IMG/VR virus record: IMGVR_UViG_3300046808_001241
Location: 124,001-188,000 of that record
Direction: 5' to 3' (one strand)
Length of the DNA: 64,000 nt
Shown here piece by piece: positions 39,318-61,756 of this stretch. The position numbers and the translations under genes were made by a program. Within the stretch, counting starts at the first letter, position 1, and the number at the start of each line of letters is the position of its first letter. The notes under the pieces were generated by a model that did no database searches, was not told the DNA's origin, and saw only the letters and a program-made list of their open reading frames with translations.

Positions 39318-39381
39318 TAAAATTACTTATTCAAAGAAAATTTGAATGAGATTTTTGAAATAAAATTGATAAATAAGATTC

Positions 39382-39955: not shown

Positions 39956-40153
39956 ATGTTCAAAAATATTTACTACAAAACCTTAGTTTGGACTTCTTAT
40001 CAAATTGGAGATATTTTGAGTAATTTTGAATATGAATGGAGTTATAACCTCTATCAAAAATGCATGAGCTTTTCTTTAGATTGCGATGAGCATATTGATT
40101 TTTGGTTTTGGAAAGAACCTCCTTTGAACGACGATGAGGATGACAATTTATGA
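39956..40153 (+). CDS. Hypothetical protein
   Basis: 65 aa; stop overlaps the nrdB start (ATGA). Confidence 0.55.
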   Translation: MFKNIYYKTLVWTSYQIGDILSNFEYEWSYNLYQKCMSFSLDCDEHIDFWFWKEPPLNDDEDDNL

Positions 40154-42903: not shown

Positions 42904-43671
42904 ATGAGTAAAAGTCATTCTTGGCTTTCAGACCAACTTAAAGGTTTTCCTAACTTTGCAAAAATGTTTCGAGATGTTCTTGCAGAGGAATTGCAGCAAA
43001 CCTATTTGGAAGAAGGTTTGATTGCGTCTTGGGATATTGAAAAATTAATCAAAAGAATATCAAACATTATTGGAGACAAAATTTTAGAAGTACAAAAAAC
43101 TACTCTTCCAGACTTTTTAAAAAATACCAACTACGGAGAAGTCTTTACTGTTAATATATTTTTAAAAGAAAAACTAACAAAAGAAGAAACAAATCAAGTA
43201 GACCAACTTTTGGATTTGTTTGGGTATACTAATGCTTTGTGGATTGAACCAGACGGACTTCAGTTGCAGCTAGAACCAAGGTATCCAGTCAAACTTAACG
43301 AACTTATAAAACAAACTTCTGACAACTATCTTTTCCATATAACTCAAAAGAAATCGCTAGACAAGATTAAAGAAATAGGATTAGCTCCAAGACCTTCAGA
43401 AACTAAATTTGAACATCCGGGAAATAGAATTTATTTGTTGTGGCTGCCAGCAGTACAAAATAAAGGGTTGATTGTGAACGCTCTTGTTAAACAGTTAGCA
43501 AACAACAAAAAGCTGGAAGAAAAAGATTTTGCTGTTATGATGCTAAAATATAACCCTAAATACGACTACTACCTAGATGATACTACAACATTGCTCGATC
43601 AAAAAATTATAGCAATGTTCACCACAAATAATATCAACCCAAAAGAAATTGTTAAAATTATAAATTTATGA
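42904..43671 (+). CDS. Tpt1/KptA-like NAD-dependent ADP-ribosyltransferase-fold protein (paralog 1)
   Basis: FHITQKKSLDKIKEIGLAP...HPGNRIYLL...YYLD...TTNNINPKEI; N-terminal LEE|GLI. Confidence 0.65.
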   Translation: MSKSHSWLSDQLKGFPNFAKMFRDVLAEELQQTYLEEGLIASWDIEKLIKRISNIIGDKILEVQKTTLPDFLKNTNYGEVFTVNIFLKEKLTKEETNQVDQLLDLFGYTNALWIEPDGLQLQLEPRYPVKLNELIKQTSDNYLFHITQKKSLDKIKEIGLAPRPSETKFEHPGNRIYLLWLPAVQNKGLIVNALVKQLANNKKLEEKDFAVMMLKYNPKYDYYLDDTTTLLDQKIIAMFTTNNINPKEIVKIINL

Positions 43672-43913
43672 AACGAATATACAAACATTATCCGAATATA
43701 TTCAATTTCAAAATTGGTAAAAAACTAAATATCGGACTTTGGAAGTATCAATCTAGTATAGTTTTTAGATGGATAAATCTCCATCCAAAAATTTGGAAGT
43801 TTTGGAGATTAAATTACTTAAAGGGTAAGTTTGTATACTTTGAGTGCACAATATATAAAAAAATAGAAATTTGGTGGGACGGATTTTTATTTCAAATAGT
43901 GCTAGATAAATGA
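43668..43913 (+). CDS. Aromatic/basic hypothetical protein
   Basis: 81-aa ORF coupled to the upstream stop. Confidence 0.45.
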   Translation: MKRIYKHYPNIFNFKIGKKLNIGLWKYQSSIVFRWINLHPKIWKFWRLNYLKGKFVYFECTIYKKIEIWWDGFLFQIVLDK

Positions 43914-43936
43914 GAAATTTTTTATAAGATTAACAT

Positions 43937-45586
43937 ATGACTGAAAAATACTATTGGCTTAACAATGACTCGCGAAAATTTCTTGAGCGTGGATATCTTC
44001 TTGAAGAAGAAACTCCGGAACAACGAATTCGAGACATTGCAGAAGCTGCTGAAAAATATCTTGGTATAAAAGGGTTTGCTGATAAATTCGAAGAATACGT
44101 TGCAAAAGGTTTCTACAGCTTAAGCTCGCCTGTATGGTCCAACTTTGGAAGAAAACGTGGTCTTCCTATAAGTTGTTTTGGATCTTACATATCCGATACA
44201 ATGGAATCGATTTTGCATAAAGTTTCAGAAGTAGGTATTATGACAAAACACGGAGGAGGAACTTCTGCATACTTTGGAGCAATTCGAGGAAGAGGAACTA
44301 CAATCTCTTGTGGAGGAGAATCTACAGGATCTGTACATTTTATGGAGCTTTACAACAAGCTAATGAATGTCGTTTCGCAAGGTAATGTTCGTAGAGGCTC
44401 ATTTGCTGCATATCTTCCCATCGATCACAAAGATATTGAAGAGTTTCTTGAGATTCGTTCAGAAGGACATGACATCCAAGAAATGTCGTTTGGTGTATGT
44501 GTTTCTGATCAATGGATGAAAGACATGGTTGATGGAGACAAAGACAAACGCAAGATTTGGTCCAAAGTCATTAAAAAGCGGTTCGAATCTGGTTATCCTT
44601 ATATCTTTTTTTCTGATACAGCCAATAATAACGCTCCACAAGTTTATAAAGACAAAGGACTAAAGATTCACAATTCCAATCTTTGCACGGAGATTTTTTT
44701 ATCCAACTCAGAAGAGGAATCTTTTGTTTGTGATCTATCGTCACTTAATCTCGAAAAGTGGGATGAAATCAAAAATACAGATGCTGTTCAAACATTAGTG
44801 TACTTCCTCGACGCTGTGATGTCAGAGTTTATTGACAAAACAGAAGGCATGCAATTCATGGAAGCTCCAAGAAAGTTTGCGATTAACCAAAGAGCTCTTG
44901 GTGTAGGTGTTCTTGGATGGCATTCGCTGCTCCAAACTAAGATGATTGCTTTTGAGTCATTTGATGCGAAGATACTTAATGTGGATGTTTGGAAGACAAT
45001 ACGGGAACGAGCTGACAAAGCCACAGAAGAACTTGCTGGTCTTTTTGGAGAACCAGAATTGCTTAAGGGCTATGGAAGAAGGAATACAACAACTCTTGCC
45101 ATTGCACCCACAACCAGCTCAGCGTTTATCTTGGGCCAAGTATCCCAGTCAATTGAGCCCTATAATTCAAACTATTATGTTCGCGACTTGGCTAAAGGTA
45201 AGTTTTCATACAAAAATCCATACCTTAAATCACTGCTAAAACAAAAGGACAAAGATAATGATGAAACATGGTCTTCGATTCTTGCTCATGGTGGTTCTGT
45301 TCAGCATCTTGATTTCTTATCAGATAATGAAAAAGACGTATTCAAAACTTTTGGAGAGCTTTCCCAAAAAGAAATCGTCATCCAAGCGGCGCAAAGGCAA
45401 AAATACATTGATCAAGGTCAATCCTTAAACGTAATGATTCCTCATGATGCTAAACCAAAAGACGTTAATGAGCTTTTGATATTTGGTTGGGAACAGGGAA
45501 TCAAGAGTTTCTACTACCAAAAATCTACCTCGCCCTCACAAAAGCTAGCTAGATCGATTCTTACCTGCAAATCTTGTGAAGGGTAA
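43937..45586 (+). CDS. nrdA: Ribonucleotide reductase alpha subunit (no ATP cone)
   Basis: SSPVWSNFG...LPISCF, KHGGGTS, QG.VRRGS.A.YL, SNLCTEI, VCDLSSLNL, AIAPTTSS, C-terminal CKSCEG. Confidence 0.97.
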   Translation: MTEKYYWLNNDSRKFLERGYLLEEETPEQRIRDIAEAAEKYLGIKGFADKFEEYVAKGFYSLSSPVWSNFGRKRGLPISCFGSYISDTMESILHKVSEVGIMTKHGGGTSAYFGAIRGRGTTISCGGESTGSVHFMELYNKLMNVVSQGNVRRGSFAAYLPIDHKDIEEFLEIRSEGHDIQEMSFGVCVSDQWMKDMVDGDKDKRKIWSKVIKKRFESGYPYIFFSDTANNNAPQVYKDKGLKIHNSNLCTEIFLSNSEEESFVCDLSSLNLEKWDEIKNTDAVQTLVYFLDAVMSEFIDKTEGMQFMEAPRKFAINQRALGVGVLGWHSLLQTKMIAFESFDAKILNVDVWKTIRERADKATEELAGLFGEPELLKGYGRRNTTTLAIAPTTSSAFILGQVSQSIEPYNSNYYVRDLAKGKFSYKNPYLKSLLKQKDKDNDETWSSILAHGGSVQHLDFLSDNEKDVFKTFGELSQKEIVIQAAQRQKYIDQGQSLNVMIPHDAKPKDVNELLIFGWEQGIKSFYYQKSTSPSQKLARSILTCKSCEG

Positions 45587-46038
45587 TGCAAGGGATTAGT
45601 CATAGAGTTTTCAATAGCGTTTTAGCAAGCGACTTGTTGATTTTATTTTATAAACAACAGCCCTTGCTGACATCTATTGTTGCTGGAGGCATGATTCTGT
45701 TTAGCAGTTTTCCTGATAAAGTAGAAGAATTTAATCTTAAACACAGAGGCATAAGCCATTCAATAATATTATATCTTTTACTTGGAGTATTATATTATTG
45801 GTTTTCAATTCATCTTCATAACTATTTTGATTGGATTGTGTATATTGGATATGGTTTAGTAGCAGGATCAATAGGACACATCCTTGCAGATATGTTTAGT
45901 AAAAGAGGAGTAAGAATTCTTGGAGCTAAGTTTAATTACGGTCTATATACTACAGGAAAAGTTTCTGAGCAGATCTTTTTATTTGGATTTGCTTTAGTGA
46001 ATTACCTGTTGATATACTGGTTCGTGTTTTGTAAATAG
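45586..46038 (+). CDS. YdjM-like membrane metal-dependent hydrolase
   Basis: SH start, FPD..E..KHRG.SHS, GHILADMFSK.GV; hydrophobic helices. Confidence 0.75.
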   Translation: MQGISHRVFNSVLASDLLILFYKQQPLLTSIVAGGMILFSSFPDKVEEFNLKHRGISHSIILYLLLGVLYYWFSIHLHNYFDWIVYIGYGLVAGSIGHILADMFSKRGVRILGAKFNYGLYTTGKVSEQIFLFGFALVNYLLIYWFVFCK

Positions 46039-46078
46039 TCTTTGGCAACACACTGCTTTAGAAAGGACACATATACAC

Positions 46079-46291
46079 ATGACAAAAAACGCTTACGAAA
46101 TCCGTTTGGATGTTCTTCAAATGGCTCATGCAGATGCTCAAATGCGTTATCTTGAAAAACTTAACACAGTTAGAGATAACACAGGAAAAGTTACTGACGG
46201 AAAACACATTGACGAACTCTTTCCAAAGACCTCAGACATCATTGACAGAGCAGAAGAACTCTATGCTTTTGTTGAAGACAAAGGTCTTTAA
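46079..46291 (+). CDS. Conserved small T4-like phage protein
   Basis: KNAYEIRLDVLQMA...P...DII..AEELYAFV. Confidence 0.7.
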   Translation: MTKNAYEIRLDVLQMAHADAQMRYLEKLNTVRDNTGKVTDGKHIDELFPKTSDIIDRAEELYAFVEDKGL

Positions 46292-46307
46292 TTAGGAGTC
46301 GAACCCA

Positions 46308-46348
46308 AGCCCTTCTGAGCTACCAACTTGGAAGGGCTCTTTTTTTTT
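46308..46348 (+). terminator. Rho-independent terminator
   Basis: AGCCCTTC...GAAGGGCT stem followed by a T9 run. Confidence 0.8.
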
Positions 46349-46371
46349 GTTGAGAAATAATTCTTTTGAAG

Positions 46372-46445
46372 GATAAATAAATTTGCTCAGTGCTCCAAAG
46401 GGCTGAACAACAAACATAACTCGCTTAATAAAGGAGATATTAAAA
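46372..46445 (+). promoter_or_regulatory. hsp20 leader: late-type promoter box, hairpin and ROSE-like SD-sequestering hairpin
   Basis: GATAAATA 46372-46379; TTGCTCAG/CTGAACAA stem 46383-46410; CTC(G)CTT-AATA-AAGGAG 46420-46436. Confidence 0.65.
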
Positions 46446-46940
46446 ATGACAAATAAACTAACTACATACGTACCTGGACACTATGCGTCCACAGAGCGTC
46501 ACTTCAGCCAGCTGCCCGCTCTGTTTTCATCCCGCTGGTTCAACTCAATCTTTGACGATACTTTCCCAGAGAAAGTTCTTGAAGATCAAAATGCCTTCTA
46601 CCCTTATAACATTTCCGTTGTAAAAGAAGGAGAAGATACCCAAAAATACATCCTCGAAGTAGCTCTTGCTGGTGTTGGTAAAAACAACATCTCGATTGAC
46701 GTCAAAGATGATGTGTTGACAATTGGAGTATTGAAAGAAGATAAGGAACCCGAACAAGGTCAATCTTATCTGAAGCGTGGAATTAGTCGTCGAAAGTCGA
46801 CTTTTTCATACAAGCTTGATACAAACCAAGTAGATGTGAAGAAAATTCAATCTGCTTACATCGATGGTCTTCTAACAGTAACAATTCCTGTTAAGAAGAA
46901 AGAAACCCATAAAGTTGATATTAAGGTTAATATTGACTAA
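46446..46940 (+). CDS. hsp20: Small heat-shock protein (Hsp20/alpha-crystallin domain)
   Basis: FYPYNI...Y.LEVALAG.....I.I......L.I...YLKRGISRR...F...A.Y.DGLL.V.IP; strong AAGGAG SD. Confidence 0.92.
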   Translation: MTNKLTTYVPGHYASTERHFSQLPALFSSRWFNSIFDDTFPEKVLEDQNAFYPYNISVVKEGEDTQKYILEVALAGVGKNNISIDVKDDVLTIGVLKEDKEPEQGQSYLKRGISRRKSTFSYKLDTNQVDVKKIQSAYIDGLLTVTIPVKKKETHKVDIKVNID

Positions 46941-46950
46941 TAACTAAAAA

Positions 46951-46972
46951 AGCCCTTTTGGAGCACTGGAGC
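46951..46972. repeat. Inverted repeat of hsp20 5'UTR (46385-46404), followed by T7; probably also a terminator between convergent genes
   Basis: agcccttttggagcactggagc reverse-complements to gctccagtgctccaaaagggct, versus gctcagtgctccaaagggct upstream. Confidence 0.85.
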
Positions 46973-46986
46973 TTTTTTTAAAAAAC

Positions 46987-47373
46987 CTATTTAGGCTTAG
47001 TTGGCCAGACTACTTCTTCAGGGGTTTTAAATGTAGTTGGAACGTCTCTTAGAGTCTGACGATAAGCTAGCCATGCTTCTTTGGAAGGCTTTGGATTAGC
47101 ATCTGGAAAGACAGACCAATCAGAGTCTTTTAAAAGAGCATCGCGTTGGGATCTAATTTGTTCCCAAGTAAGAGGATCAACAGGTTCTGGTGTGTTACCT
47201 TTTTCGAGCCAAGCAAGATATGCTTGGTAATCGCTATTAGTAGGATCAAATGCGAAACTAACTTGCGGTGTCACCCCAACGCTCATAGCGTGATTTGGAA
47301 CAATTTGACTTGGTGAGGTTTTATAAAGTTTGTACATCATAAGGTTTAATATTATAATTCGCATCCAGTCCAC
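46987..47373 (-). CDS. Tail fibre assembly chaperone (paralog of 18752..19138)
   Basis: DPTNSDYQAYLAWL.KGNTPEP; W.QIR.QRDALL..SDW...KPSKEAWL.YRQ.LRD.P. Confidence 0.8.
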   Translation of the reverse strand: MDWMRIIILNLMMYKLYKTSPSQIVPNHAMSVGVTPQVSFAFDPTNSDYQAYLAWLEKGNTPEPVDPLTWEQIRSQRDALLKDSDWSVFPDANPKPSKEAWLAYRQTLRDVPTTFKTPEEVVWPTKPK

Positions 47374-48254
47374 AAGATTCTACTGCCAGCAGTTTGACAT
47401 TGCAAATCATATACAGCAGAACTTATAACTCCGCTTCCGCCACCAAGTTGTGCATGGCCAACAGTTAGACTAGCCCATAAAAATTGAAATGTTGCTGTCG
47501 AAAATGGTACCCCGCTAACAAGAAAAGTGCCTGACACACTTACTCCTGTTGGAGGAATTCGTGGAGTGGTGATAAATTGAAACAAAACACTTACATAGCT
47601 GGGTGTAGAGTGTCCACGACCCAAACAAATTGTTTCATACCCTGATGTGTAATTATATGCTGGTAAATACCTCTGACACAAAGCGAGTTCAGTTCCAATA
47701 GGTCTGTGCTCAAAAACAGTAGGAACGTTTCCTTTTTCAAGCTGAGGTAATGAAAAAGTTCCTCCAACGAAACTTACTGTAACATTTGATCCTCCTGTTA
47801 AAGTAAACGTTTCGCCTTTTGTTCTTGCTGTTCCATTTACTGTAGCAGTGGCTGTTCCGGTCCAATTTAAAACATAAGTTCCAGATTCAACGTTCAGTCC
47901 TTCTACTACCTGCTCTACTCCTCCTGCAGGAGCCGTAAAAGTAGCTATGTTCTGGGATGTCAAAAAGGATAAATTCTGACCAGAAGTAACAACTCTCCAT
48001 CTATCTACCGTGTATTGATTTGCTTGAGTCGTTGTTGCTCCAGAGATGTAGCCTCTTTGATTAATAAGACCTTGAGCGTTGATGAGTTTGTTTCTAAAGC
48101 AAAAGTTCAAGCTTGGGATTGAGCTTCTATTTTCAAGCTCACAAACAGCAACATCCAAATTCTTAAAATTATTATTAATTTTTACGAGAGAATTGCCAAT
48201 ACATTCTGTTCTTTCAATGTTTTGAACATATTGATCACCAGTGCAAGTAGCCAT
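47352..48254 (-). CDS. Fibre/receptor-binding protein with CIGDSL-type anchor
   Basis: ECIGNSLVKINNNF..LDVAVC; FRNKLIN....INQRG, YTVDRW, QLEKG.V.T.FE.RP.G.EL.LCQRY. Confidence 0.75.
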   Translation of the reverse strand: MATCTGDQYVQNIERTECIGNSLVKINNNFKNLDVAVCELENRSSIPSLNFCFRNKLINAQGLINQRGYISGATTTQANQYTVDRWRVVTSGQNLSFLTSQNIATFTAPAGGVEQVVEGLNVESGTYVLNWTGTATATVNGTARTKGETFTLTGGSNVTVSFVGGTFSLPQLEKGNVPTVFEHRPIGTELALCQRYLPAYNYTSGYETICLGRGHSTPSYVSVLFQFITTPRIPPTGVSVSGTFLVSGVPFSTATFQFLWASLTVGHAQLGGGSGVISSAVYDLQCQTAGSRILWTGCEL

Positions 48255-48280
48255 ATCTTTAATTATTCAAAAGAACTCAA

Positions 48281-50095: not shown

Positions 50096-50112
50096 TTAGG
50101 CTTACTTATCGC

Positions 50113-50319
50113 TTAAACTTCTTTTGCCCAACTGCGCGGAGTCATTTCAAATCCAAGATCTTTAATGGTTTTGTTGGTATTTCCGCTCAATTCAATTTGA
50201 TATGTTTCAACTGGAGCTTGGCAAGTGTTTGCAGCAGTTTCGTCAGTATAGACATTGCAAATAGCAAAGTCAAAACCTTTTTCAGGATCAATATTAATTA
50301 TGTCGATTCGATGTAGCAT
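50113..50319 (-). CDS. Hypothetical protein
   Basis: 68 aa with a TAAATA box upstream. Confidence 0.55.
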   Translation of the reverse strand: MLHRIDIINIDPEKGFDFAICNVYTDETAANTCQAPVETYQIELSGNTNKTIKDLGFEMTPRSWAKEV

Positions 50320-50334
50320 AATGTTATTTAGTAT

Positions 50335-51711
50335 TTAAAATTTATTATTAAACGGAGAAGTAACAAAATTCATATCAAGAGAAACCGTGTCATATGTATT
50401 TGTTGGATCGTAGATGCGGGCGGTTGTGCTGTCATGTGGAACGCAAAATACTTTTCCGTTTTGCATGAGTACTGCACCAAATCCTGACCCTCCTCCAGTA
50501 AAAACTGCACTTGAAGTGATTAAAGTATCCGATACAGGATCGTATATCTTGGCATTTGTTGTAGATGCGTAGGATAAAGGTGGAATGAACACTTTTCCAT
50601 TAGGAAGAATAACTCCACCAGCAGCAAACAAACCTCCTGGATATGTTCCGCTTGGTACAGTAGTTGTATCCGTTATAGGATCATAAATCCTAGCAGTAGT
50701 GTTAGAAGCAGGAACGCAAAAAACTTTTCCGTTAGGTAATAGAACTGCTCCTAGAGAAGAACTGCTTGATGCAAATGTTCCGCTTGGAGTAGTTAAGGTG
50801 TCTGTAACAGGATCATAAATTCTTGCAGTAGGACCATCTTCAGGATTGCAAAATACTCTACCGTCTGAAAGAAGTACTGCTCCCGAAAAAGAATATGCTG
50901 GAAACGTTCCACCCGCAATAGTTGATGAATTTGTTGACGGATTATAAATTACAGATGGTCCAGAAGTACCCATGTGTCTTAGACAATAAACTCTACCGTC
51001 TGGAAGTAATACTCCTCCATAATAATTATCAGGAAAACTTCCACCAGCAATACTTACGGTATCTGTAGTGGGATTGTATATTCTAGGACTATTACCTTGA
51101 TTTGGGATACAAAATACTCTTCCATCTGGAAGCAAAACTCCCCCATTCGAAAAATAACCTCCTGGATACGTTCCGTTCGGAACGGTTGTAGTATTGGTTA
51201 TTGGATCATATATTCTAGCTGTAGTGCTAAAGCAAGGAACACAAAACACTCTTCCGTCTCGCATTAGAACTCCTCCAATAAAAGCGGACCCACCCGGAAA
51301 GGTCCCATTTGGAGTAGTCAATCGATCCCCAACAATCACATCGTTATTCCTAATAGTATCTAACAAGGCAGCTCTATAATTGACCCATCCAGACCCAATT
51401 TGATTATTTGTAGCGCTTGTTTGAGGAGTTGAGTTCCAAGTTGGAAATGGTCTTGCTCCTCCCCATTGCGTCCCATTGAATGTCATCATCTGACCAGAAG
51501 AAGCTCCAGAAACGCTAACAACTGCTGATAAGACTTTTGAAGTGCTTTGATAAGTCAAATCAATATTAGCAGAATCAACAATATTTAAACTTCCTCCAGT
51601 AGCAGATAAGCTTAAAAGGTTTGCAGAAAGTGTTTGGAAAGCTCCATTGAGATATTCAAGAGAGTCCCCAATACATTGATCTTCAGAAATTGGAATGCCA
51701 GCGAGTGTCAT
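50335..51711 (-). CDS. CIGDSL anchor plus 7-bladed kelch-like beta-propeller (paralog A)
   Basis: Seven G(G/A)VL..(D/N)G(R/K)V...RIY(D/N)P blades. Confidence 0.8.
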   Translation of the reverse strand: MTLAGIPISEDQCIGDSLEYLNGAFQTLSANLLSLSATGGSLNIVDSANIDLTYQSTSKVLSAVVSVSGASSGQMMTFNGTQWGGARPFPTWNSTPQTSATNNQIGSGWVNYRAALLDTIRNNDVIVGDRLTTPNGTFPGGSAFIGGVLMRDGRVFCVPCFSTTARIYDPITNTTTVPNGTYPGGYFSNGGVLLPDGRVFCIPNQGNSPRIYNPTTDTVSIAGGSFPDNYYGGVLLPDGRVYCLRHMGTSGPSVIYNPSTNSSTIAGGTFPAYSFSGAVLLSDGRVFCNPEDGPTARIYDPVTDTLTTPSGTFASSSSSLGAVLLPNGKVFCVPASNTTARIYDPITDTTTVPSGTYPGGLFAAGGVILPNGKVFIPPLSYASTTNAKIYDPVSDTLITSSAVFTGGGSGFGAVLMQNGKVFCVPHDSTTARIYDPTNTYDTVSLDMNFVTSPFNNKF

Positions 51712-51719
51712 GTTAGTAT

Positions 51720-53099
51720 TTATGAGCCAAAGTTTACATATGGACTAGTAACAAAATTCATATCAAGAGAAACTGATTGATACGTCGAAGTTGGATCGTA
51801 AATTCTTGCTGTAGTACCGTTGTGCACAAACACTTTTCCGTTTTGCATTAAAGTTAATCCACCATATGATACAGAGCTCATTCCTATATCTACTGAGCGA
51901 CTCGTATCTGTCAATGGATCGTAAATGTGAGCGCCACCACCAAATCCAACTATTAATACTTTTCCGTTTGGAAGAACACAGGCATCTCCAGAACCAAAAT
52001 TAGAGCCCCCACTTGGTGTAGATACTGTATTGGTTATTGGATCATATATTCTTGCTGGAGCTGGGCTTGTATCACTCGCTGTAGTATAACTAGTGCAAAA
52101 AACTTTTCCGTTTGGAAGTAAAACCACCTTTGACGTAAATTGAGGCAGCCCTCCAACGGTTGTAGTCGTTAATGTAGTGACAGGGTCATATATTCTTGCT
52201 GTACCGTCACCTGCAAAAATAGGCACAAATATTTTTCCGTCAGGAAGAAGTGTAGCTGATTGAGCATATGCTCCTCCGGAAACGTAGGCATAAATTGGCG
52301 TAGCAGGCACGAAAACAGTTCCTGTAACAGGATCCCAAATATGTGCATAGCCACTATAACCCGGAATAGTAAATATTTTTCCACTAGGTAAAACTATAGC
52401 AACTACTCCTTGACTCGTTAACCCAGACCAAGATCCAGAATTTGTAACTGTTTCGGTTACATAATCCCAAATAGCTGCTTGAGGAGCTGTATGTGGATTT
52501 ACAAATACTCTTCCGTCTGGAAGCAAACAAGCTCCAATATATTCCGGACCTCCAAACGTTCCACCTGGAACTGTAATGGCATTTGTAGAAGGATTATAAA
52601 TACGAGCTGTAGTTGTATTTACTGGAGGTAAAAATACTCTTCCGTCTTTAAGTAGAATTCCTCTAGACCATAATCCATTTATTGTTCCGCTTGGAGTAGT
52701 CAATCTATCCCCAACAATGTCCCTATTATTCCTAATAACATCAGTCAGAGCTCTTTGATAATTTAAAAATCCGCTATTGCCAATTTGGTTATTAACAGCG
52801 CTTGTTTGAGGAGTTGAGTTCCATGTCGGAAATGATCTTGCTCCAACAAATGCTGACAAAGTGCTGCTATAAGTCATTCTTTGACCGTCTTGAGCAGTCA
52901 GTGCTAAAGTTGCTGTCAAGGTCTTTGTTGAAGAATTATAATCCAAATCAATAGTTGAAGAATCTTTGGCAGACAACGCATTAAAGCTTGCAGAAACGCT
53001 ATAAACGTTTGTAGAAAGAGTTTGAAAAGCGCTATTAATATATTGAAGAGAATCGCTTATGCACTGATCTTCTGAAATTGGAATGCCATTAAGAACCAT
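51720..53099 (-). CDS. CIGDSL anchor plus 7-bladed kelch-like beta-propeller (paralog B, diverged blades)
   Basis: Seven LL..G(R/K)(V/I)F blades; same linker and C-terminus as A and C. Confidence 0.8.
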   Translation of the reverse strand: MVLNGIPISEDQCISDSLQYINSAFQTLSTNVYSVSASFNALSAKDSSTIDLDYNSSTKTLTATLALTAQDGQRMTYSSTLSAFVGARSFPTWNSTPQTSAVNNQIGNSGFLNYQRALTDVIRNNRDIVGDRLTTPSGTINGLWSRGILLKDGRVFLPPVNTTTARIYNPSTNAITVPGGTFGGPEYIGACLLPDGRVFVNPHTAPQAAIWDYVTETVTNSGSWSGLTSQGVVAIVLPSGKIFTIPGYSGYAHIWDPVTGTVFVPATPIYAYVSGGAYAQSATLLPDGKIFVPIFAGDGTARIYDPVTTLTTTTVGGLPQFTSKVVLLPNGKVFCTSYTTASDTSPAPARIYDPITNTVSTPSGGSNFGSGDACVLPNGKVLIVGFGGGAHIYDPLTDTSRSVDIGMSSVSYGGLTLMQNGKVFVHNGTTARIYDPTSTYQSVSLDMNFVTSPYVNFGS

Positions 53100-53103
53100 A
53101 ATG

Positions 53104-54492
53104 TTAGTATTTATTTACGAATGGGCTTGTTACAAAATTCGTATCAAGAGTAATTGGTTGATAAGAATCTGTTGGATCATAGATGCGGGCGGTTGTGCTG
53201 TCGCAAGGCACTAAAAACACTTTTCCGTTAGGAAGGAGAACACCTCCAAAAAAAGGAAAACCAAGAGGATAATTCCCACTCGGCGTAGTCAATGTATCGG
53301 TAACAGGATCATATATTTTCGCTGTTGTGTTATTATTATTCGGAATACAAAATACTTTTCCGTTTGGAAGAAGAACTCCTCCAAAAAAAGATCCAGAATA
53401 CGTTCCAGCAGGTATTGTCAATGTGTCTGTTACTGGATCATAAATACGAGCGGTTGTAGAGGTATTTGGAACACAAAATACTTTTCCGTTTGGAAGAAGA
53501 ACGCCTCCTGCAAAAGCTCCTGCTGTAGGATACGTTCCTGTAGGGGTCGTTAATGTGTCTGTTGCTGGATTGTAAATACGAGCAGTTGCAGAGTTGTGTG
53601 GAACAGAAAAAACTCTACCGTCACCAAGAAGAACGCCTCCTATAAAAGCAAAAGTTCCTGTAGGATATGTTACTGTAGGGATCGTTAATGTGTCTGTTGC
53701 TGGATTGTAAATACGGGCAGTTGTGGATTGATTAGCTGGAAGACAAAATACTCTACCGTCACCAAGAAGAACACCACCCCTAAAGGCTCCACCTCCAGGA
53801 TATGATCCTGTTGGAGTTGATACAGTATTTGTTATTGGATCATAAATACGAGCGGTAGTGCTATAATATGGTACACAAAAAACTTTTCCGTTTGGAAGAA
53901 GAACGCCTCCTGCAAAGGCATAATTTCCAGGATATGATCCTAATGGAGTTGATACAGTATCTGTTATTGGATCATAAATGCGAGCGGTTGTAGAGTTGCT
54001 CGGTACACAAAATACTTTTCCGTCTGGAAGAATAACTCCTCCTTCAAACGCCTCGCTTCCCGTGTAAGTCCCATTTGGAGTAGTCAACCTATCTCCACTA
54101 ATGTCCCTATTATTCCTAATAACATCAGTAAGTGCTCTTTGCCAGTTTGCAAAGCCATTAATAGATGTTCCACTTAATTGCAAATTTTGAGCACTTGTTG
54201 CGGGAGTCGAGTTCCATGTTGGAAAAGGTCTTTGATCAACCCACTTTTGCTGGACTGCATCATAAGTCAAAGTTTCACCAGCAGAAGCAGGTACAGAAAT
54301 TGTTGCAGAAAGAACTTTCGATGAGCTGTTATAAAATAGAGCAACTTGGTCATTGCTTAGCACATTTAAATTTGCAGCTCCTAATGAAATTCCTTTAACA
54401 TTTGCCGAGAGGGACAAAAAAGCATTGTTGATTGTGTCTAATGAATCTCCAATACAATCATTTTCGGAGATAGGAATGCCGGACAAAACCAT
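53104..54492 (-). CDS. CIGDSL anchor plus 7-bladed kelch-like beta-propeller (paralog C, near-identical blades)
   Basis: Seven GGV(L/I)L(P/G)(N/D)G(K/R)VF..P...TARIY(D/N)P.T.T blades of about 43 aa, with visible DNA repeats. Confidence 0.8.
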   Translation of the reverse strand: MVLSGIPISENDCIGDSLDTINNAFLSLSANVKGISLGAANLNVLSNDQVALFYNSSSKVLSATISVPASAGETLTYDAVQQKWVDQRPFPTWNSTPATSAQNLQLSGTSINGFANWQRALTDVIRNNRDISGDRLTTPNGTYTGSEAFEGGVILPDGKVFCVPSNSTTARIYDPITDTVSTPLGSYPGNYAFAGGVLLPNGKVFCVPYYSTTARIYDPITNTVSTPTGSYPGGGAFRGGVLLGDGRVFCLPANQSTTARIYNPATDTLTIPTVTYPTGTFAFIGGVLLGDGRVFSVPHNSATARIYNPATDTLTTPTGTYPTAGAFAGGVLLPNGKVFCVPNTSTTARIYDPVTDTLTIPAGTYSGSFFGGVLLPNGKVFCIPNNNNTTAKIYDPVTDTLTTPSGNYPLGFPFFGGVLLPNGKVFLVPCDSTTARIYDPTDSYQPITLDTNFVTSPFVNKY

Positions 54493-54500
54493 GTGTATAT

Positions 54501-56489: not shown

Positions 56490-56497
56490 GATGTTAT

Positions 56498-56704
56498 TTA
56501 TTCAACCACTTCTACAACAGAAGCAGGAATCCCTACAAACAACCCACCATATACTGGAAAGTTTGCATTATAGTAAGTGTCTCCGTCTTGTAAAAAAGTG
56601 GCTTTAACTTCTCCAGCTTCTCCGTTTAATGCATCACTAATGTCATCCCATTTTGCGCCAAATTCTGAGACCAGTCCCGTTTTTTTTATTTTAATTTTAG
56701 ACAT
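56498..56704 (-). CDS. Hypothetical protein
   Basis: 68 aa, overlapping the upstream stop. Confidence 0.5.
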   Translation of the reverse strand: MSKIKIKKTGLVSEFGAKWDDISDALNGEAGEVKATFLQDGDTYYNANFPVYGGLFVGIPASVVEVVE

Positions 56705-57371
56705 AAAATATATTCATTACCATGCTATTTGCTGCTTGAGCGTTAGTATTGTTGTTGTCAGCAATTCCCGCTACTATTCTAAATGAAATTCCATTCTGGA
56801 ATTTAAAACCAGATGTTGGCCACCTAAGTCCTCCTCCACCTGCAAAGGTTTGGTACCAAAGCGACCAAGCAATTACAAAAATAGGAATGTCTGCAGAAGT
56901 TGGAGTAGTGGCTTTATCATAAAGTTTCAAATACATCATGGTTCCGTCATTTGAGGGCCATGAATTATAAGTTCCAGCTGAAAATGACATTTCCCCTATA
57001 ATTCCAGGCGAAGCTTTAACTACTGTAGCGTTTGTGGTAGCAGCATTAGTGTATCTAAAAATACTTGAATAACCTTCGACAGCAGGAGAAGAATCTATAA
57101 CTAATTGCGGAGTATCATAGATTACTTGTAGTTGATCTCCAGAAGAATGAGTGGATGTATCAACTTTAAGAGTTAAGACTTTTGTTCCGCTGTTCCAACT
57201 AAAGTAACCTGTACTAGATTGACCGGTTGCATAAAGAAGCGTTCCTCTTGTTTGATTAAGAACAGCAAGAAGACCAGCTATGTTAAATCCATTAACAGCG
57301 GAAAAGTCAAGAGTTCCAGCGTTTGCTGCACCTGGCGTAAAAGTGGGATTGGTTGATAGTATAGATTTCAT
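56697..57371 (-). CDS. Virion structural protein
   Basis: Y/FTF.P....G.L.F....LL.V.N.T....LY...D N-terminal pattern; C-terminal YLKLYDKAT.PT...P...F..GI module. Confidence 0.6.
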   Translation of the reverse strand: MKSILSTNPTFTPGAANAGTLDFSAVNGFNIAGLLAVLNQTRGTLLYATGQSSTGYFSWNSGTKVLTLKVDTSTHSSGDQLQVIYDTPQLVIDSSPAVEGYSSIFRYTNAATTNATVVKASPGIIGEMSFSAGTYNSWPSNDGTMMYLKLYDKATTPTSADIPIFVIAWSLWYQTFAGGGGLRWPTSGFKFQNGISFRIVAGIADNNNTNAQAANSMVMNIFYV

Positions 57372-57379
57372 ATATTAAT

Positions 57380-57616
57380 TTATCCAAAAATTAAAGCATA
57401 AGGAATGAGAGGAGCTTCTGCAGAAAGAGTCCTTGTGTAAGAATCAAAAGTTAGATCAACTGTTGGACTGTCGACAACATTAAAAGAATCTACAGCAGTT
57501 AATAGCTGACAAACATTATTCCCAAGCACGGAAAAATTCGAGTTGATCTTGGGAAGAGAGTCACCAATACACTCAGTACCTAAAATTGTTTGAATGGGAT
57601 TCTGTACACAAGACAT
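57380..57616 (-). CDS. Stand-alone CIGDSL anchor protein (78 aa)
   Basis: ECIGDSLPKINSNFSVLGNNVC...VVDSPTVDLTFDSYTRTLSA then LIPYALIFG*; GATAAATA at 57626-57633. Confidence 0.75.
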   Translation of the reverse strand: MSCVQNPIQTILGTECIGDSLPKINSNFSVLGNNVCQLLTAVDSFNVVDSPTVDLTFDSYTRTLSAEAPLIPYALIFG

Positions 57617-57624
57617 AATAACAA

Positions 57625-58095
57625 TTATTTATCGTCGATTTTCAGAATTTCTTCATTTTCCGGCATTATTAGCTTCTTCATAATTTCTTCGCGAGAAGCT
57701 ACGAGAATGTTGTTGTTAGTGACTTGCTTTGGAGCTTGATTAAGTTGAGCAATTTCTTTTCTTCCTTCAATCCTTACTCGTTCTAGTTGTTCGTCCCTAT
57801 CTGCTTTTTTGTCAATTAAATTTGTTTTATTCAAAGCATCTAACATTTGAGCAGTAGAAGCAATGAGTTTGGCTAATGCTTCAACGTCTTTTGCATCCCC
57901 GGAACTTGTTGTAGCTTGAGTCAAATCTTGCACAGCTCCAACACTTGCTTCAATAACAGCTTTGGTCTTGTTTAAAAAATATTGTTCCGTATCTTCTTTA
58001 TTAAGCACTGGATCTGTTTCGAATGCCTTTTTTGTATTTGGTGCAGGCATTTCGAATGAACTTAATTCATCGAGAAGTGTTTGGATATCGTCCAC
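57625..58095 (-). CDS. Probable terminase small subunit, T4 gp16-like
   Basis: Helical core (A..D....G.AK.VEALAKLI) and C-terminal VTNNNILVASREEIMKKL, resembling gp16 TNN..F.GST.EL. Confidence 0.6.
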   Translation of the reverse strand: MDDIQTLLDELSSFEMPAPNTKKAFETDPVLNKEDTEQYFLNKTKAVIEASVGAVQDLTQATTSSGDAKDVEALAKLIASTAQMLDALNKTNLIDKKADRDEQLERVRIEGRKEIAQLNQAPKQVTNNNILVASREEIMKKLIMPENEEILKIDDK

Positions 58096-58113
58096 GAATA
58101 TTATTTAGCACAG

Positions 58114-58142
58114 TTGACTTGTTTTGAAAAGGTTTTATATTA
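58114..58142 (+). promoter_or_regulatory. Possible sigma70-type promoter
   Basis: TTGACT-16/17nt-TATATT/ATATTA before the ATG at 58149. Confidence 0.45.
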
Positions 58143-58148
58143 ATTCTG

Positions 58149-58340
58149 ATGCAAATTACTATTCAAACTCGTGCAGGACTATTCATTGTCCCAGAACACA
58201 AAGAAGCAGAGCTTATTATGTGGCTTCAAACCAACGCCATCAAAGCGGGTCAACAAACGGTATATGAGCAAGGCCAAACAATTAGCCAAGGATATACTGG
58301 CCGTCAGTTGATTTCGGAGGATCTTGGAAGGGAGTTTTGA
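58149..58340 (+). CDS. Hypothetical protein
   Basis: 63 aa; overlaps the dcd start. Confidence 0.55.
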   Translation: MQITIQTRAGLFIVPEHKEAELIMWLQTNAIKAGQQTVYEQGQTISQGYTGRQLISEDLGREF

Positions 58341-58852
58341 TTATGAAACACATTCTAGGACCCAATTCAAGAAGCACTCTTACAAACGTTCAAGAAGGAG
58401 ACAGCCAACCAAATGCTGTTGATCTTCGTTTGGATAAAGTTTTTAAGATTCTTCCAACTGTATTTGAGATTTCTGACACTCATAAGAAGTTGAGAGAAAC
58501 TCAAGAAGTGCTTCCTGATGAAGAAGGATATTTTAATCTTGAAGTAGGAGATTATGAGATAGTTATGAGTAATATTATTAGCGTAGGAAGTGGAGAATCT
58601 GGTTGGATTATTATAAGAAGTTCGTTAAATAGGTCTAACATCTTCACCACGTCGGGCTTGTTTGATAGCAAATACACTGGTTGCGCTGCGGCCTGTTTGC
58701 ATGTTGGTACAGGGCCTGCTCGAATCAAAAAAGGAACTCGCGTTGCTCAATATCTAAGTTTTGATGCTGAAATGCTCCATGGTTATAATGGAAGTTATGG
58801 ATTTGGAGCAGATGGAAAACCAAAAGCAGATGAAGCAAAATATCACGCGTAG
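58337..58852 (+). CDS. dcd: dCTP deaminase / trimeric dUTPase-family protein
   Basis: QPNAVDLRL, RSSLNR, SGLFDSKYTG, RVAQ, YNGSYG. Confidence 0.8.
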   Translation: MIMKHILGPNSRSTLTNVQEGDSQPNAVDLRLDKVFKILPTVFEISDTHKKLRETQEVLPDEEGYFNLEVGDYEIVMSNIISVGSGESGWIIIRSSLNRSNIFTTSGLFDSKYTGCAAACLHVGTGPARIKKGTRVAQYLSFDAEMLHGYNGSYGFGADGKPKADEAKYHA

Positions 58853-58858
58853 CGACTA

Positions 58859-59953
58859 TTAATAAAGCCGTTCGCATTGCTTTAAATGACTAGGCTTTCG
58901 TCTACCTCCAAAACACCATGCTAAGTCTAAATCTTTTTCTGCATAAGACCAAAGATACCCATGAGCTGATCTTGTTCCATTGCTTTTTCTGCAGCACTCT
59001 ATAATCGCAGACGTATGGTTCTTGCCAACTGCCTTGGCTGCGTCAAGAAAACTACGAAACGTTTGTATGTATTCCCCTGAAAAGTTATATTGAGTTACCG
59101 CTCTAACTGCTCTTCCTGTACTCTTTTTCATTTTGGGTCGAGGGTCAATGGGTAGGCCACATTTAAAGGCTGCGACCCTTTGAGAGCGATTAGTTGGTAT
59201 ATATGGTCCTGGGGACTTGAAAGTAAATGTCCATCTAAATCCCAAAGATATAGAACCTATTCTAGCGCTTTTGTATATATTTCCTGAACCTTCTTGTCTA
59301 TAACCTAGTATGCAATCCTTTGCAGTTTGGGCATTGGGATATCGGTTTATGTAGTTCCCGTGCAAATCCCATTGATATACAGGTCTTTTCTTCTCAAAAC
59401 ACCACTCCAAATCAAGCTGCTCGTTTTCATAAGACCAAAAATATCCTCCGGTAGATTTTTGACCGTCGCTTCTCATGCAACACGCACTTACTGCAGAAGA
59501 AGTGTTTTGTCCGCAATGTTGCGCAGCAGCCAAACAACTGGGAAACGAGCGAATATATTCTCCGAACAAGTTATATTGCTTGACTGGGGAACATAATTTA
59601 TGACTCGGTTCTTCTCCCAGCTTTATGTTGGTAAGAATACCGCCCTCATCGAGATTGGATCGTCCCCATTTTTGTATCAATCTTTTTTCTTCATCTAATG
59701 CAGTTTGCTCGTCAAAACTTTCAAATACTATTTCATATTTTGGTCCATAACCTAACTTTTTTAATTTTTCTATTTTATTAAATTTGTATGGATTGCTCAT
59801 TTTATCAGAAGACCAGTTGTGATAATGCGCTTCGACTCGCTTTCCTTTTCCCTTTCCAACATAAAAAGGTTGATCATTTCTTGGGTCTATGAGAACATAG
59901 ACGTAGTACATAGAATCTGCAGGTAGTTTTTGATTTTCGTTTGTCATAAGCAT
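58859..59953 (-). mobile_element. GIY-YIG homing endonuclease with NUMOD1 repeats, antisense to the operon
   Basis: YYVYVLIDPRNDQPFYVGKGKGKR...H; three PV.Q(Y/W)...G.YI..(F/Y).S...AA repeats; CATAAGTA at 59957-59964. Confidence 0.85.
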
Positions 59954-59963
59954 AATTACTTAT

Positions 59964-60029
59964 GCTCAAGCGCTTTATTTTTTGGTTCGTTTGACATAAG
60001 CACTCTTCCTACCATTAAAGCGCTTGAGC
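59964..60029. repeat. Perfect 14-bp inverted repeat with 38-nt spacer
   Basis: GCTCAAGCGCTTTA (59964-59977) / TAAAGCGCTTGAGC (60016-60029), followed by T6 on the plus strand. Confidence 0.9.
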
Positions 60030-60057
60030 TTTTTTAATTTCATAGTAAAGTGTCTTC

Positions 60058-60243
60058 ATGCATAAATTTAAAGTAGGGGACAGAATCTGTAAGCCAAAAG
60101 GCTATACATTTGATGGAGAAGTTCGTTCCGTCTTTGAGACAATTAATGGAGACGTGAGAGTTGTTGCTGAGTTGACTACTTCTAATGGTCTTGGAATGCT
60201 TCATATTTTTAGCGAATCTCAGTTAGAATTGAGAGCAGAATGA
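60058..60243 (+). CDS. DfrB/R67-DHFR-like SH3-fold mini-protein
   Basis: FKVGDRICKPKGYTFDGEV...AE...GMLHIFSESQLE aligns by eye with R67 FGMGDRVRKKSGAAWQGQI...VE...GSVQIYPVAALE. Confidence 0.6.
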   Translation: MHKFKVGDRICKPKGYTFDGEVRSVFETINGDVRVVAELTTSNGLGMLHIFSESQLELRAE

Positions 60244-60977
60244 ATCACCAGTCGTTTATAGATTACTTCAATAGAGAAGAACAACTCATCCTTCAAGAAG
60301 GTCTAATAACGACATATCCAGCATCTGCTTTTGAGCATGCTTTAAAAACAAACTTTAAAGAGCATATTAAAGAATTGTTTGTAGATAAAAACTTTCTTGG
60401 TTTCAAAACAAAGTTTGAGCTACATTTAAAAGATGTTTCTAAATTAAAAGAAATTGAAAAATTTGCAAATACTTACGGTTATCATTTTGGAGCTTTTAAA
60501 GACAATCCTCCAATGGTACAAATCGAACCAAAATATCCTTACAAAGTATTCAAAGATGATCTACCAGAAAAAGCATATCATATTACAAGAAACGAACATC
60601 TTCAAACAATTCTTAATAAAGGATTGACTCCAAAAGAATCAAAAACGTTTTTTAAACATCCAGGAAATAGAATTTATTTGTTTGTTACGAAGAATTTGCA
60701 AGACGTTTTAAAGCTAAAAGAGCTTCTCAAAAAAACTTTTTCTGCTAGAGAACAAAACGTTGGGTTATCGGTTCTAGAAATAGATTCGTGGTCAGAAGTT
60801 TATTACCTAGATCCTAACCTTGAACCAAAAGATATTTCCAATCATAGCTTAAGAATCTTTACTTTGAGAAACATACCTCCTCAAATGATAAAATTTTTGC
60901 CAGAACTTTCAGATAATAATGGAAAAATCACAAAATCAGTAGAAGATTTCAAGTATCGACAAAATTTAAAGAAATGA
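60240..60977 (+). CDS. Tpt1/KptA-like ADP-ribosyltransferase-fold protein (paralog 2)
   Basis: YHITRNEHLQTILNKGLTP...HPGNRIYLF...VLEID...YYLDP...TLRNIPPQMI; N-terminal LQE|GLI. Confidence 0.65.
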   Translation: MNHQSFIDYFNREEQLILQEGLITTYPASAFEHALKTNFKEHIKELFVDKNFLGFKTKFELHLKDVSKLKEIEKFANTYGYHFGAFKDNPPMVQIEPKYPYKVFKDDLPEKAYHITRNEHLQTILNKGLTPKESKTFFKHPGNRIYLFVTKNLQDVLKLKELLKKTFSAREQNVGLSVLEIDSWSEVYYLDPNLEPKDISNHSLRIFTLRNIPPQMIKFLPELSDNNGKITKSVEDFKYRQNLKK

Positions 60978-61756
60978 GTGACGATAAAATAGAAAAAATT
61001 ACTCATATGACTTTTTATGAGTTTTATAAGCAAGAAGAGCGATTAGTGCTTGCTGAAGGTCTTATAAAGTCCTACCCAATTTTAAATTTTAAATTGGCTG
61101 TTTTACATACTTTTAGAGAGCATCTTTTACATATTGGAATCGGCCAATCTTTTGGAATGGATATAAATCTTGTTATCGTTTTAGATGAAAGAGACGAAGT
61201 TGCTCTTAAAGAGATTGAAGAATTTGCTGACACGTATGGTTATCATCTAGGATTTACAAAAAAACTTTTATATAAAGGTAAAGCTTGTAAAAGCCACCAG
61301 TTTGATCCAAAATATCCAATTGTCATCTCCAAAGAATATATTCCAAAAGTAGGCTTTCATATTGCCAGAAACGAACATTTGAAAAGCATTTTTGAAATTG
61401 GGCTAACTCCTAAAACGAGTAAGAGTGATTTTAAACACCCGGGCAACAGAGTATACCTTCTGGTTGCAAACTCTGTTAATTCAATTCTAAAGACTAAAGA
61501 AGTTTTAAGAGGACATGCTAAACGAAAAAAGCCGAACGAGATTGTTGAGTTGTCTGTGCTAAAAGTCAATATTAATGAAGACTTGGTTTATTATTTTGAC
61601 CCCAATCTTGAGCCAGGAGCTATTGATCCGGAATGCTTTGGAATGTTTGTTCTCAGAAACATTCATCCAGCATATGTTGAACTTCTTCCGGAATTGTCGG
61701 ATAATAAAGGAGTTTCGTCGAAATATAAAGAGTACCACAAAAATTTAAAGAAATGA
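60974..61756 (+). CDS. Tpt1/KptA-like ADP-ribosyltransferase-fold protein (paralog 3)
   Basis: FHIARNEHLKSIFEIGLTP...HPGNRVYLL...VLKVN...YYFDP...VLRNIHPAYV; N-terminal LAE|GLI. Confidence 0.62.
   Translation: MSDDKIEKITHMTFYEFYKQEERLVLAEGLIKSYPILNFKLAVLHTFREHLLHIGIGQSFGMDINLVIVLDERDEVALKEIEEFADTYGYHLGFTKKLLYKGKACKSHQFDPKYPIVISKEYIPKVGFHIARNEHLKSIFEIGLTPKTSKSDFKHPGNRVYLLVANSVNSILKTKEVLRGHAKRKKPNEIVELSVLKVNINEDLVYYFDPNLEPGAIDPECFGMFVLRNIHPAYVELLPELSDNKGVSSKYKEYHKNLKK

Follow-up and report, generated by a model that had tools for sequence, protein, structure and literature searches.

ADP-ribosylation is central to the conflict between phages and their hosts, examples being Alt, ModA, and ModB of T4, DarTG, CmdTAC, AcrIF11, and the depletion and reconstitution of NAD. 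In T4, ModA and ModB are made in the infected cell and Alt is packaged. Arr is a minimal single-domain bacterial enzyme with a small-molecule substrate and a His-Tyr-Asp (H-Y-D) pattern. Alt, ModA, and ModB are ADP-ribosyltransferases (ARTs) of the R-S-E class (PMC9503650). Tpt1 is recognized by an H-H-h signature and a catalytic tetrad, of which Arg-His-Arg is located in a winged-helix RNA lobe and the remaining Arg in the NAD lobe (PMC6182162, PMC9503650), and the partnership of KptA with 2H enzymes is known in RNA end repair (PMC9503650). In this study, a stretch of 64,000 nucleotides (the window), comprising bases 124001-188000 of one 217,182-bp IMG/VR virus record, was analyzed for three open reading frames (ORFs), designated A, B, and C (Table 1), which a preliminary description had regarded as Tpt1/KptA-like ARTs with a capsid-targeting leader. 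The three are anciently diverged members of a large unannotated phage and metagenome family, and the fold predicted for their C-terminal half is that of an ART.

Three ORFs were indeed present at the positions described, and tblastn against the whole 217-kb genome showed them to be paralogs. B and C, whose reading frames share 4 nt, were 42% identical (E 1.6e-56), A and C were 27% identical over 228 aa (E 1.7e-15), and A matched B with an E value of about 1e-10; each paralog used as the query detected the A, B, and C loci alone. Given these E values, they are true homologs and not chance motif matches. A three-way alignment contained every motif listed previously, with L-x-E-G-L-I at residues 35-40 of A, 18-23 of B, and 26-31 of C, together with GY...Q.(E/D)P(K/R)YP, H-I-(T/A)...I...GL.P, HPGNR(I/V)YL, YY(L/F)D, and NI.P, and the leaders FRDVLAEE, FIDYFNREE, and FYEFYKQEE were borne out by the translations. 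Since the starts of homologs align with Met21 of A and with Met12 of C, and residues 1-20 of A were modelled at pLDDT <50, the true leaders preceding EGLI may all be about 17-20 aa in length.

AlphaFold2 models were built for A and B from family alignments, giving pLDDT values of 86.6 for A and 88.9 for B (pTM 0.82). In both models, an N-terminal helix was followed by an alpha/beta domain and, at the C-terminus, by a beta-rich domain. As anticipated in the preliminary description, the predicted C-terminal domain was closest to Tpt1/KptA in Foldseek and VIA-align comparisons and in weak profile matches. With model B, the top 15 Foldseek matches in the PDB were all Tpt1/KptA (probability 0.82-0.99), and the VIA-align Z scores were 8.8 for KptA, 7.9 for mouse Tpt1, 7.8 for PltA, 7.6 for pertussis toxin S1, and 7.4 for DarT1. 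With model A, 7/7 PDB matches with Z ≥8 belonged to the ART superfamily, including KptA (9.6), DarT1 (9.2), mouse Tpt1 (9.2), PltA (8.5), Thermus DarT (8.3), M. tuberculosis DarT (8.1), and CC0527, a DUF952-type protein (8.0). Comparison of model B with AFDB clusters ranked DUF4433/DarT first (E 9e-6), followed by Tpt1, DUF952, and RES. BFVD matches were an uncultured marine phage protein (E 1e-10), phage Tpt1-like proteins, and phage DarT, and the named neighbours in the ESM Atlas were Arr, Tox-ART-HYD1, and PARP.

Sequence comparison pointed in the same direction. The family profile matched Tpt1 (E 0.0066) and DarT1 (E 0.1) in the PDB, with no other fold among the top eight. Alignment by hhalign with E. 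coli KptA (annotated K-12 record) gave an E value of 2e-4 at a probability of 46%, and paired YHIT with YHGT, GL with GL, and R144 with the Arg of GERHYVHL in KptA (here and below, residue positions without a protein label follow the numbering of B). The middle domain, about 75 aa in length, matched generic ferredoxin-like folds with Z scores of 5-7, namely EpsM/XcpY/PulM, HAD caps, S6, and ACT/NIL-type domains. These matches, obtained with both A and B, agree with the earlier statement that the RNA lobe of Tpt1 is swapped for a different domain, which is ferredoxin-like. Neither the pI nor the charge of the domains was informative.

Scans of A, B, and C with Pfam, PHROG, NCBIfam, and PADLOC models yielded no significant family match, and the DarT models in Pfam, NCBIfam, and PADLOC were not matched either; a PHROG Tpt1 match at E 0.17 was not significant, and a PADLOC AbiEii match at E 0.0024 was judged to be due to chance. 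A word-indexed search with the three-protein alignment retrieved 78 homologs, 0/78 with a Pfam domain. The exhaustive profile search detected 2,737 representatives of clusters (defined at 50% identity) at E ≤1e-3 and 1,631 at E ≤1e-10, most members being 220-270 aa in length. The family was seen in phage and metagenome contigs only, often in several copies per genome. When 50,697 phage records, among which near relatives may be missing, were searched by megablast and tblastn, A remained unmatched and the sole match of B was a sequence of 26% identity (E 0.04) in a 642-kb uncultured phage. In cellular genomes, no relative was found with the three-sequence alignment, which is a narrow search pattern. 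Phage ARTs as a kind of protein are already known; the family described here, its architecture, and its set of conserved residues have no counterpart in Pfam, PHROG, NCBIfam, or PADLOC.

Conservation was calculated over 162 non-redundant family members. The fractions were 1.0 for H114 and G128, 0.99 for E20, G80, and D191, 0.97 for R144 and Y146, 0.96 for E96, and 0.88 for H140, and G21 and Y81 were also near-invariant. H114, R144, Y146, D191, and E20 are kept in A, B, and C, and position 96 is Glu in A and B and Asp in C; with these residues retained, none of the three looks degenerate. The His is located on strand 1, the Arg-x-Tyr on strand 2, and the Asp after strand 4, and the two Glu residues come from the N-terminal part. 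The resulting His...Arg-x-Tyr...Asp looks like the H-Y-[EDQ] class (Arr, Tox-ART-HYD1, and DarT), with the putative equivalence to the H-Y-D triad being deduced from strand positions in model B.

Comparison with Tpt1 revealed marked differences. The Pfam Tpt1 model (PF01885) gave no hmmscan match, and the genome search with it gave 12 bits (E 0.02), the cut-off being 26. The Arg-His-Arg of the Tpt1 N-lobe is absent, and no Arg, His, or Lys is conserved in the N-domain across the 162 members. The counterpart of the Tpt1 NAD-lobe Arg is R144, which is 97% conserved, in an hhalign pairing with a probability of only 46%. The second His of the H-H-h signature is absent as well, the KptA His being paired with F148, and the conserved residue in this region is Y146, two positions earlier. 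Hence, of the earlier designation Tpt1-like, the ART fold nearest to Tpt1/KptA was retained, but family membership was not: with the Pfam score below the cut-off and both the RNA lobe and the second His absent, A, B, and C are not members of the Tpt1 family. Neither was the Arg-Ser-Glu signature found in the family, in which strand 1 carries the invariant His and no S-x-S or E-x-E is conserved.

Loci from scans of encoding contigs, IMG/VR, and metagenomes were combined into 28 non-redundant loci (numbered with L). A ribonucleotide reductase (RNR) gene adjoins a family gene in four lineages, i.e., the window phage with L013 and L034 (class I), L015 (class I with an ATP cone), L001 (class II), and L032 (class II). 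In L003, L008, and L024, thyX is located directly 5′ of the family gene. In L005, the family gene is surrounded by small early-like ORFs, Tad3, and DUF4326, and GroEL, NUDIX, and NAMPT genes come next; a NUDIX gene also lies near the homolog P0207. Two copies per locus were found in L013, L014, L027, L028, and L032, those of L032 being in tandem.

Relatives differed in the presence of whole genes. In L013, an additional paralog, the fourth, is inserted precisely at the junction of the 65-aa ORF and nrdB of the A operon; its identity to A, B, and C is about 30%. The 567-aa endonuclease ORF preceding A is missing in both L013 and L034, and the 81-aa ORF following A is present in L034 and not in L013. 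As detected by blastn, L022 lacks the whole C gene (window 60983-61780), and B is directly followed there by the clamp loader gene. Such whole-gene presence and absence indicates the dynamics of accessory cassettes and not of core metabolic genes.

Two homologs are fusions. P0204 (445 aa) has a 2H phosphoesterase fused to the family domain; its first 195 residues contain two H-x-T-x motifs and have 85 homologs, many of which match PF13563 (2'-5' RNA ligase/2H), PF02834 (LigT), and PF23474 (Acb1). This single fusion does not fix the chemistry, since the 2H domain is as near to Acb1 as to LigT; it suggests RNA or nucleotide chemistry or counter-defence, without deciding between them. P0207 (892 aa) has an N-terminus that is PcfJ-like by language-model features only, and this was taken only as a lead.

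Some further observations were made at these loci. The 283- and 284-aa ORFs of L003 (11263-12117, minus strand) and L008 (9750-10601, minus strand) matched the family hidden Markov model with E values of about 1e-4 and may represent a further, very distant paralog class. DUF723 genes recur near family members in L001, L015, and L020. A family of about 220 aa, 'c1', which has no Pfam or PHROG match, was found near ART-like genes elsewhere and directly downstream of them in L005 and L027 (Table 1). It was dropped as a candidate partner, the copy in the window phage being 145 kb away in the early region (genome 21780-22418).

Taken together, these data make it probable, on the strength of the models, that A, B, and C are ART-class enzymes that use NAD+ to transfer ADP-ribose, and confidence in any particular target is much lower. 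NAD+ would be bound via the His/Tyr pair, and ADP-ribose would be passed to a substrate held between the ferredoxin-like and ART domains. The substrate would most likely be a nucleic acid, or a nucleotide or phosphate group, since Tpt1/KptA and DarT act on RNA and DNA and one homolog is fused to a 2H domain. The proteins would be made and act inside the infected cell as products of accessory genes, carried as single-gene cassettes between conserved genes for nucleotide metabolism and replication and gained or lost among related phages, and co-resident paralogs may have different targets in host takeover or counter-defence. Several points weigh against this interpretation. Known ARTs are matched only weakly at the sequence level (hhalign probability 46%; Pfam Tpt1 12 bits), and the ART assignment therefore rests mainly on predicted structure. 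The three conserved acidic residues suit a phosphate nucleophile of the Tpt1 type poorly, the 2H domain of P0204 is equally close to the anti-CBASS Acb1 and LigT-type models, and the adjacency to RNR and thyX genes may reflect inherited synteny or hot spots of cassette insertion.

An alternative is that NAD+ is consumed or sensed without modification of a macromolecule, by an NADase, a RES-like NAD+ phosphorylase, a small-molecule ART of the Arr type, or a non-catalytic blocker of a host NAD-dependent defence protein. RES, Arr, Tne2, and MbcT were indeed among the lower structural matches, the H-Y-D pattern is as in Arr, the clusters of Arr and Tox-ART-HYD1 are neighbours in the ESM Atlas, and the N-domain resembles ligand-binding folds of the ACT/NIL type. 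A Tad6 cluster was also matched in the ESM Atlas at a TM score of 0.43, under the usual same-fold level and kept as a lead only, and Tad3, NUDIX, and NAMPT genes are located near one homolog (L005). Nevertheless, all the matches favouring such an activity were weaker than those to Tpt1 and DarT, destruction of NAD+ would oppose the NAD salvage genes near homologs, and the near-invariant His, Arg, Tyr, and Asp favour catalysis over pure binding. We regard this alternative as unlikely.

The 217,182-bp genome has direct terminal repeats, a completeness rating of 100%, and a G+C content of 36.7%. The window phage is a distant T4-like myovirus, in which Hsp20, tail-fibre, and virion genes were found; the best tblastn identity of its clamp loader gp44 was about 37%, to cyanophage homologs. 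DNA runs matching the phage were obtained from freshwater metagenomes only. The features surrounding the three paralogs are listed in Table 1.

Table 1. Positions of paralogs A, B, and C, neighbouring genes, and putative regulatory elements in the window (positions of 'c1' copies refer to the respective loci)
Feature	Position	Strand	Evidence or remarks
Late-type box GATAAATAA, A operon	39369..39377	+	13 nt 5′ of first operon ATG (39382)
nrdB, RNR small chain	40150..41142	+	Upstream of A in operon; Pfam PF00268, E 3.5e-44
Late-type box TTAAGTAAT	41184		13 nt 5′ of endonuclease ORF ATG
Homing-endonuclease-like ORF, 567 aa	41197..42900	+	PHROG HNH; Pfam DUF723, REase_MTES_1575, Mom-like
Paralog A, 255 aa	42904..43671	+	ORF translation, alignment, AlphaFold2 model
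Paralog A, layout			EGLI motif nt 43006-43023; ferredoxin-like domain ~aa 41-126; ART domain ~aa 127-255
Paralog A, key residues			E37, E124, H145, H171, R175, Y177, D225
81-aa ORF	43668..43913	+	No assigned function; between A and nrdA
nrdA-like RNR large chain, 549 aa	43937..45586	+	Downstream of A; PHROG 84, E 6e-144; PF02867, E 7e-97
Terminator-like hairpin	46308-46338		End of A operon
GIY-YIG/NUMOD1 homing-endonuclease-like gene	58859..59953	-	Divergent from B/C operon; late-type box ATAAGTAAT
Sigma-70-like TTGACA-17 nt-ATTAAA	59991..60019	+	Sequence inspection; upstream of 61-aa ORF
61-aa ORF	60058-60243		Leads into B
Paralog B, 245 aa	60240..60977	+	ORF translation, alignment, AlphaFold2 model
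Paralog B, layout			EGLI motif nt 60291-60308; ferredoxin-like domain aa 26-100; ART domain aa 101-222
Paralog B, key residues			E20, E96, H114, H140, R144, Y146, D191
Paralog C, 260 aa	60974..61756	+	Tandem with B; EGLI motif nt 61049-61066
Paralog C, key residues			E28, D111, H129, H155, R159, Y161, D209
Clamp loader, gp44 type	61753..62685	+	PHROG 168, E 4.5e-69; directly after C, 4-nt overlap
'c1' copies, ~220 aa	L005 6717-7361; L027 6305-6970; L001 11665-12351; L015 10822-11496; L041 3400-4062

The A operon has the order 176-aa ORF, 65-aa ORF, nrdB, endonuclease ORF, A, 81-aa ORF, nrdA, and YdjM-like ORF, with the endonuclease ORF between nrdB and A stopping 4 nt short of A. The RNR large chain is without an ATP cone, and its N-terminal all-alpha domain is weak; the gene after it (45586-46038) encodes the YdjM-like membrane protein. 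The GIY-YIG gene is flanked by a dCTP deaminase/dUTPase-like gene (58343-58852) on one side and by the B/C operon on the other. The sigma-70-like sequence in front of this operon is flanked by a perfect 10-bp inverted repeat (59966-59975/60020-60029, gctcaagcgc/gcgcttgagc), which could act as a terminator in both directions or as a regulatory hairpin.

Generic sigma-70 and terminator scans and a search for T4 TATAAATA gave results at chance level and were replaced by de novo k-mer enrichment upstream of ORFs, from which two classes of boxes were obtained. The first, TTGACCTGTCC...TAnAAT, is located 35-39 nt before ATG, occurs mainly within genome 0-20 kb, and reads as an early-type promoter. 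The second, GATAA(A/G)TAA, is located 12-16 nt before ATG; ATAAATA was found upstream of 46 genes, compared with 4.1 expected. GATAA(A/G)TAA precedes the protease, scaffold, capsid, virion, and both homing-endonuclease genes and, by analogy with T4 TATAAATA, is presumably of late type. GATAAATAA itself also occurs 5′ of the protease and scaffold genes, and the variant ATAAGTAA occurs 5′ of the capsid gene. Examples in the window are at 39369, 41184, 51723, 53114, 54504, 56501, 57632, and 58114. The boxes are very close to the start codons, which implies very short or absent mRNA leaders. No late-type box was found upstream of B and C by motif scans or sequence inspection. The earlier remark that the paralogs are without late boxes thus applies to B and C, and not to A, which has boxes at 39369 and 41184.

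Other late-type boxes accompany ORFs outside these operons. Three tandem paralogous ORFs of about 460 aa in the virion block (50335-54492, minus strand), with weak matches to PHROG 16216/7207, have one each, and a near-identical 18-mer, GGAT(C/T)ATAAATACGAGC(G/T), is present at 52596, 53440, and 53842 on the strand opposite to them. A 185-aa ORF (genome 102111-102668, minus strand), about 3.4 kb from the capsid gene, also has a late-type box; its short leader ends in L-Y-E-G-I-T, several other [LI]xE sites are present, and the ORF may encode a scaffold or an internal head protein of the phage.

The preliminary description had likened LxE|GLI to a capsid-targeting leader, according to which A, B, and C would reach the prohead via the targeting helix, be cut by a gp21-type protease after L-x-E, be packaged together with the DNA, and be injected as NAD-dependent effectors like T4 Alt. 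The phage encodes such a prohead protease (Peptidase_S77, PF03420, E 3.7e-26, genome 108877-109314), and the L-R-E-G near residue 56 of its capsid protein, Gp23, is plausible as a maturation site. Like T4 proteins with a capsid-targeting sequence, A, B, and C have an [LI]xE site near the N-terminus, at the end of a short acidic/aromatic helix, which in A was modelled at lower confidence (pLDDT 48-66). Late-type boxes stand upstream of A, the homologs in L011 and L012 adjoin a T4-type portal gene, and about 44% of phage ARTs have been reported in packaging contexts (PMC9503650).

The conserved block, however, is longer than a cleavage site. L-x-EGLI-x-SYP/D, 9 residues in length, was present in 56/56 aligned homologs and extends C-terminally, reaching six residues past the putative cut, and it is internal in both fusions (at about residue 205/445 of P0204 and residue 668/892 of P0207). 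The N-terminal helix of B was placed confidently (pLDDT 77-92). [LI]xE occurs 784 times in 66,818 aa of the proteome, or one per 85 aa, so that finding one within a leader of 40 residues is not remarkable. Among the unrelated internal cargo proteins of T4, the targeting sequence is the sole conserved part (PMC3012670), whereas here the motif belongs to one family, and a search of the proteome showed the leader to be absent from every other protein of the genome. In addition, B and C are without a late-type box, and most homologs are found among nucleotide-metabolism or early-like genes. In five IMG/VR contigs with homologs, gp21 and gp23 were not found, which is uninformative because these contigs are 11-49% complete. 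The leader proposal is not supported by these data, and packaging of A, B, and C in an injected-effector system, for which no positive evidence was found, is considered quite unlikely. The EGLI block reads as part of the fold or the active-site region, perhaps together with E96, and not as a disposable leader.

The least probable of the alternatives, and in our opinion very unlikely, is that A, B, and C act in the manner of Tpt1/KptA and ADP-ribosylate a terminal or 2′-phosphate on RNA, for example in the repair of cleaved tRNA, and release an ADP-ribose cyclic phosphate for processing by a 2H enzyme; Tpt1/KptA accounts for the nearest solved structures and for every significant sequence match, R144 pairs with the Tpt1 NAD-lobe Arg, P0204 is fused to the classical KptA partner (PMC9503650), and the phage has 14 tRNA genes, but the Arg-His-Arg lobe is replaced by a ferredoxin-like domain without a conserved basic residue, the second signature His is aligned to Phe, the extra conserved residues are acidic (E20, E96, and D191), the Pfam Tpt1 score is far under the cut-off, 3-4 diverged copies per genome are unexpected for a repair enzyme, and no 2H enzyme or RNA ligase was detectable in the phage genome, which weakens a role in tRNA repair.

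With ART-class activity inside the infected cell as the preferred interpretation, a broader role can be proposed tentatively. This phage-only ART family, distinct from Alt/ModA/ModB, DarT, and Tpt1, might supply freshwater and marine T4-like phages with a toolkit for host takeover or counter-defence, in which cassettes beside nucleotide and replication genes would act on nucleic acids, their ends, or nucleotides, each co-resident paralog having its own target. In the extreme version, DNA-directed modification would aid the spread of the cassettes in the fashion of homing endonucleases. The family comprises at least 2,700 clusters; its predicted ART fold is set in a domain architecture that is new, and genomes carry several diverged copies. 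Definition of the substrate would add a branch to the nucleic-acid- or nucleotide-directed ARTs and could explain why an accessory slot recurs beside the RNR, thyX, and clamp-loader genes of T4-like phages from the environment.

Among known systems, Tpt1/KptA is the best structural match (Z 8.8-9.6), sharing with the family the two-lobe layout with a C-terminal, NAD-binding ART lobe, as well as YH(I/G)T, GL.P, and the Arg of strand 2; it differs in having a winged-helix N-lobe with Arg-His-Arg in place of the ferredoxin-like N-domain. DarT (DUF4433, PF14487) resembles the family in the ART core, the strand 1 His, and the Arg/Tyr pair (Z 7.4-9.2; best AFDB cluster). Differences are the extra N-terminal domain of the family and its Asp compared with the catalytic Glu of DarT, an equivalence that is tentative. 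No DarG-like macro or NADAR partner was found beside A, B, or C, the neighbours being RNR, homing endonuclease, and clamp loader genes. Arr (Z 6.0) and Tox-ART-HYD1 share the His...Tyr...Asp and are ESM Atlas neighbours, but Arr is a single-domain enzyme acting on a small molecule, and the triad equivalence of A, B, and C derives from strand positions only. As in T4 with Alt, ModA, and ModB, three ART paralogs occur in a T4-like phage, presumably serving host takeover; unlike those enzymes with their R-S-E signature, A, B, and C are of the His/Tyr/Asp type and have another architecture.

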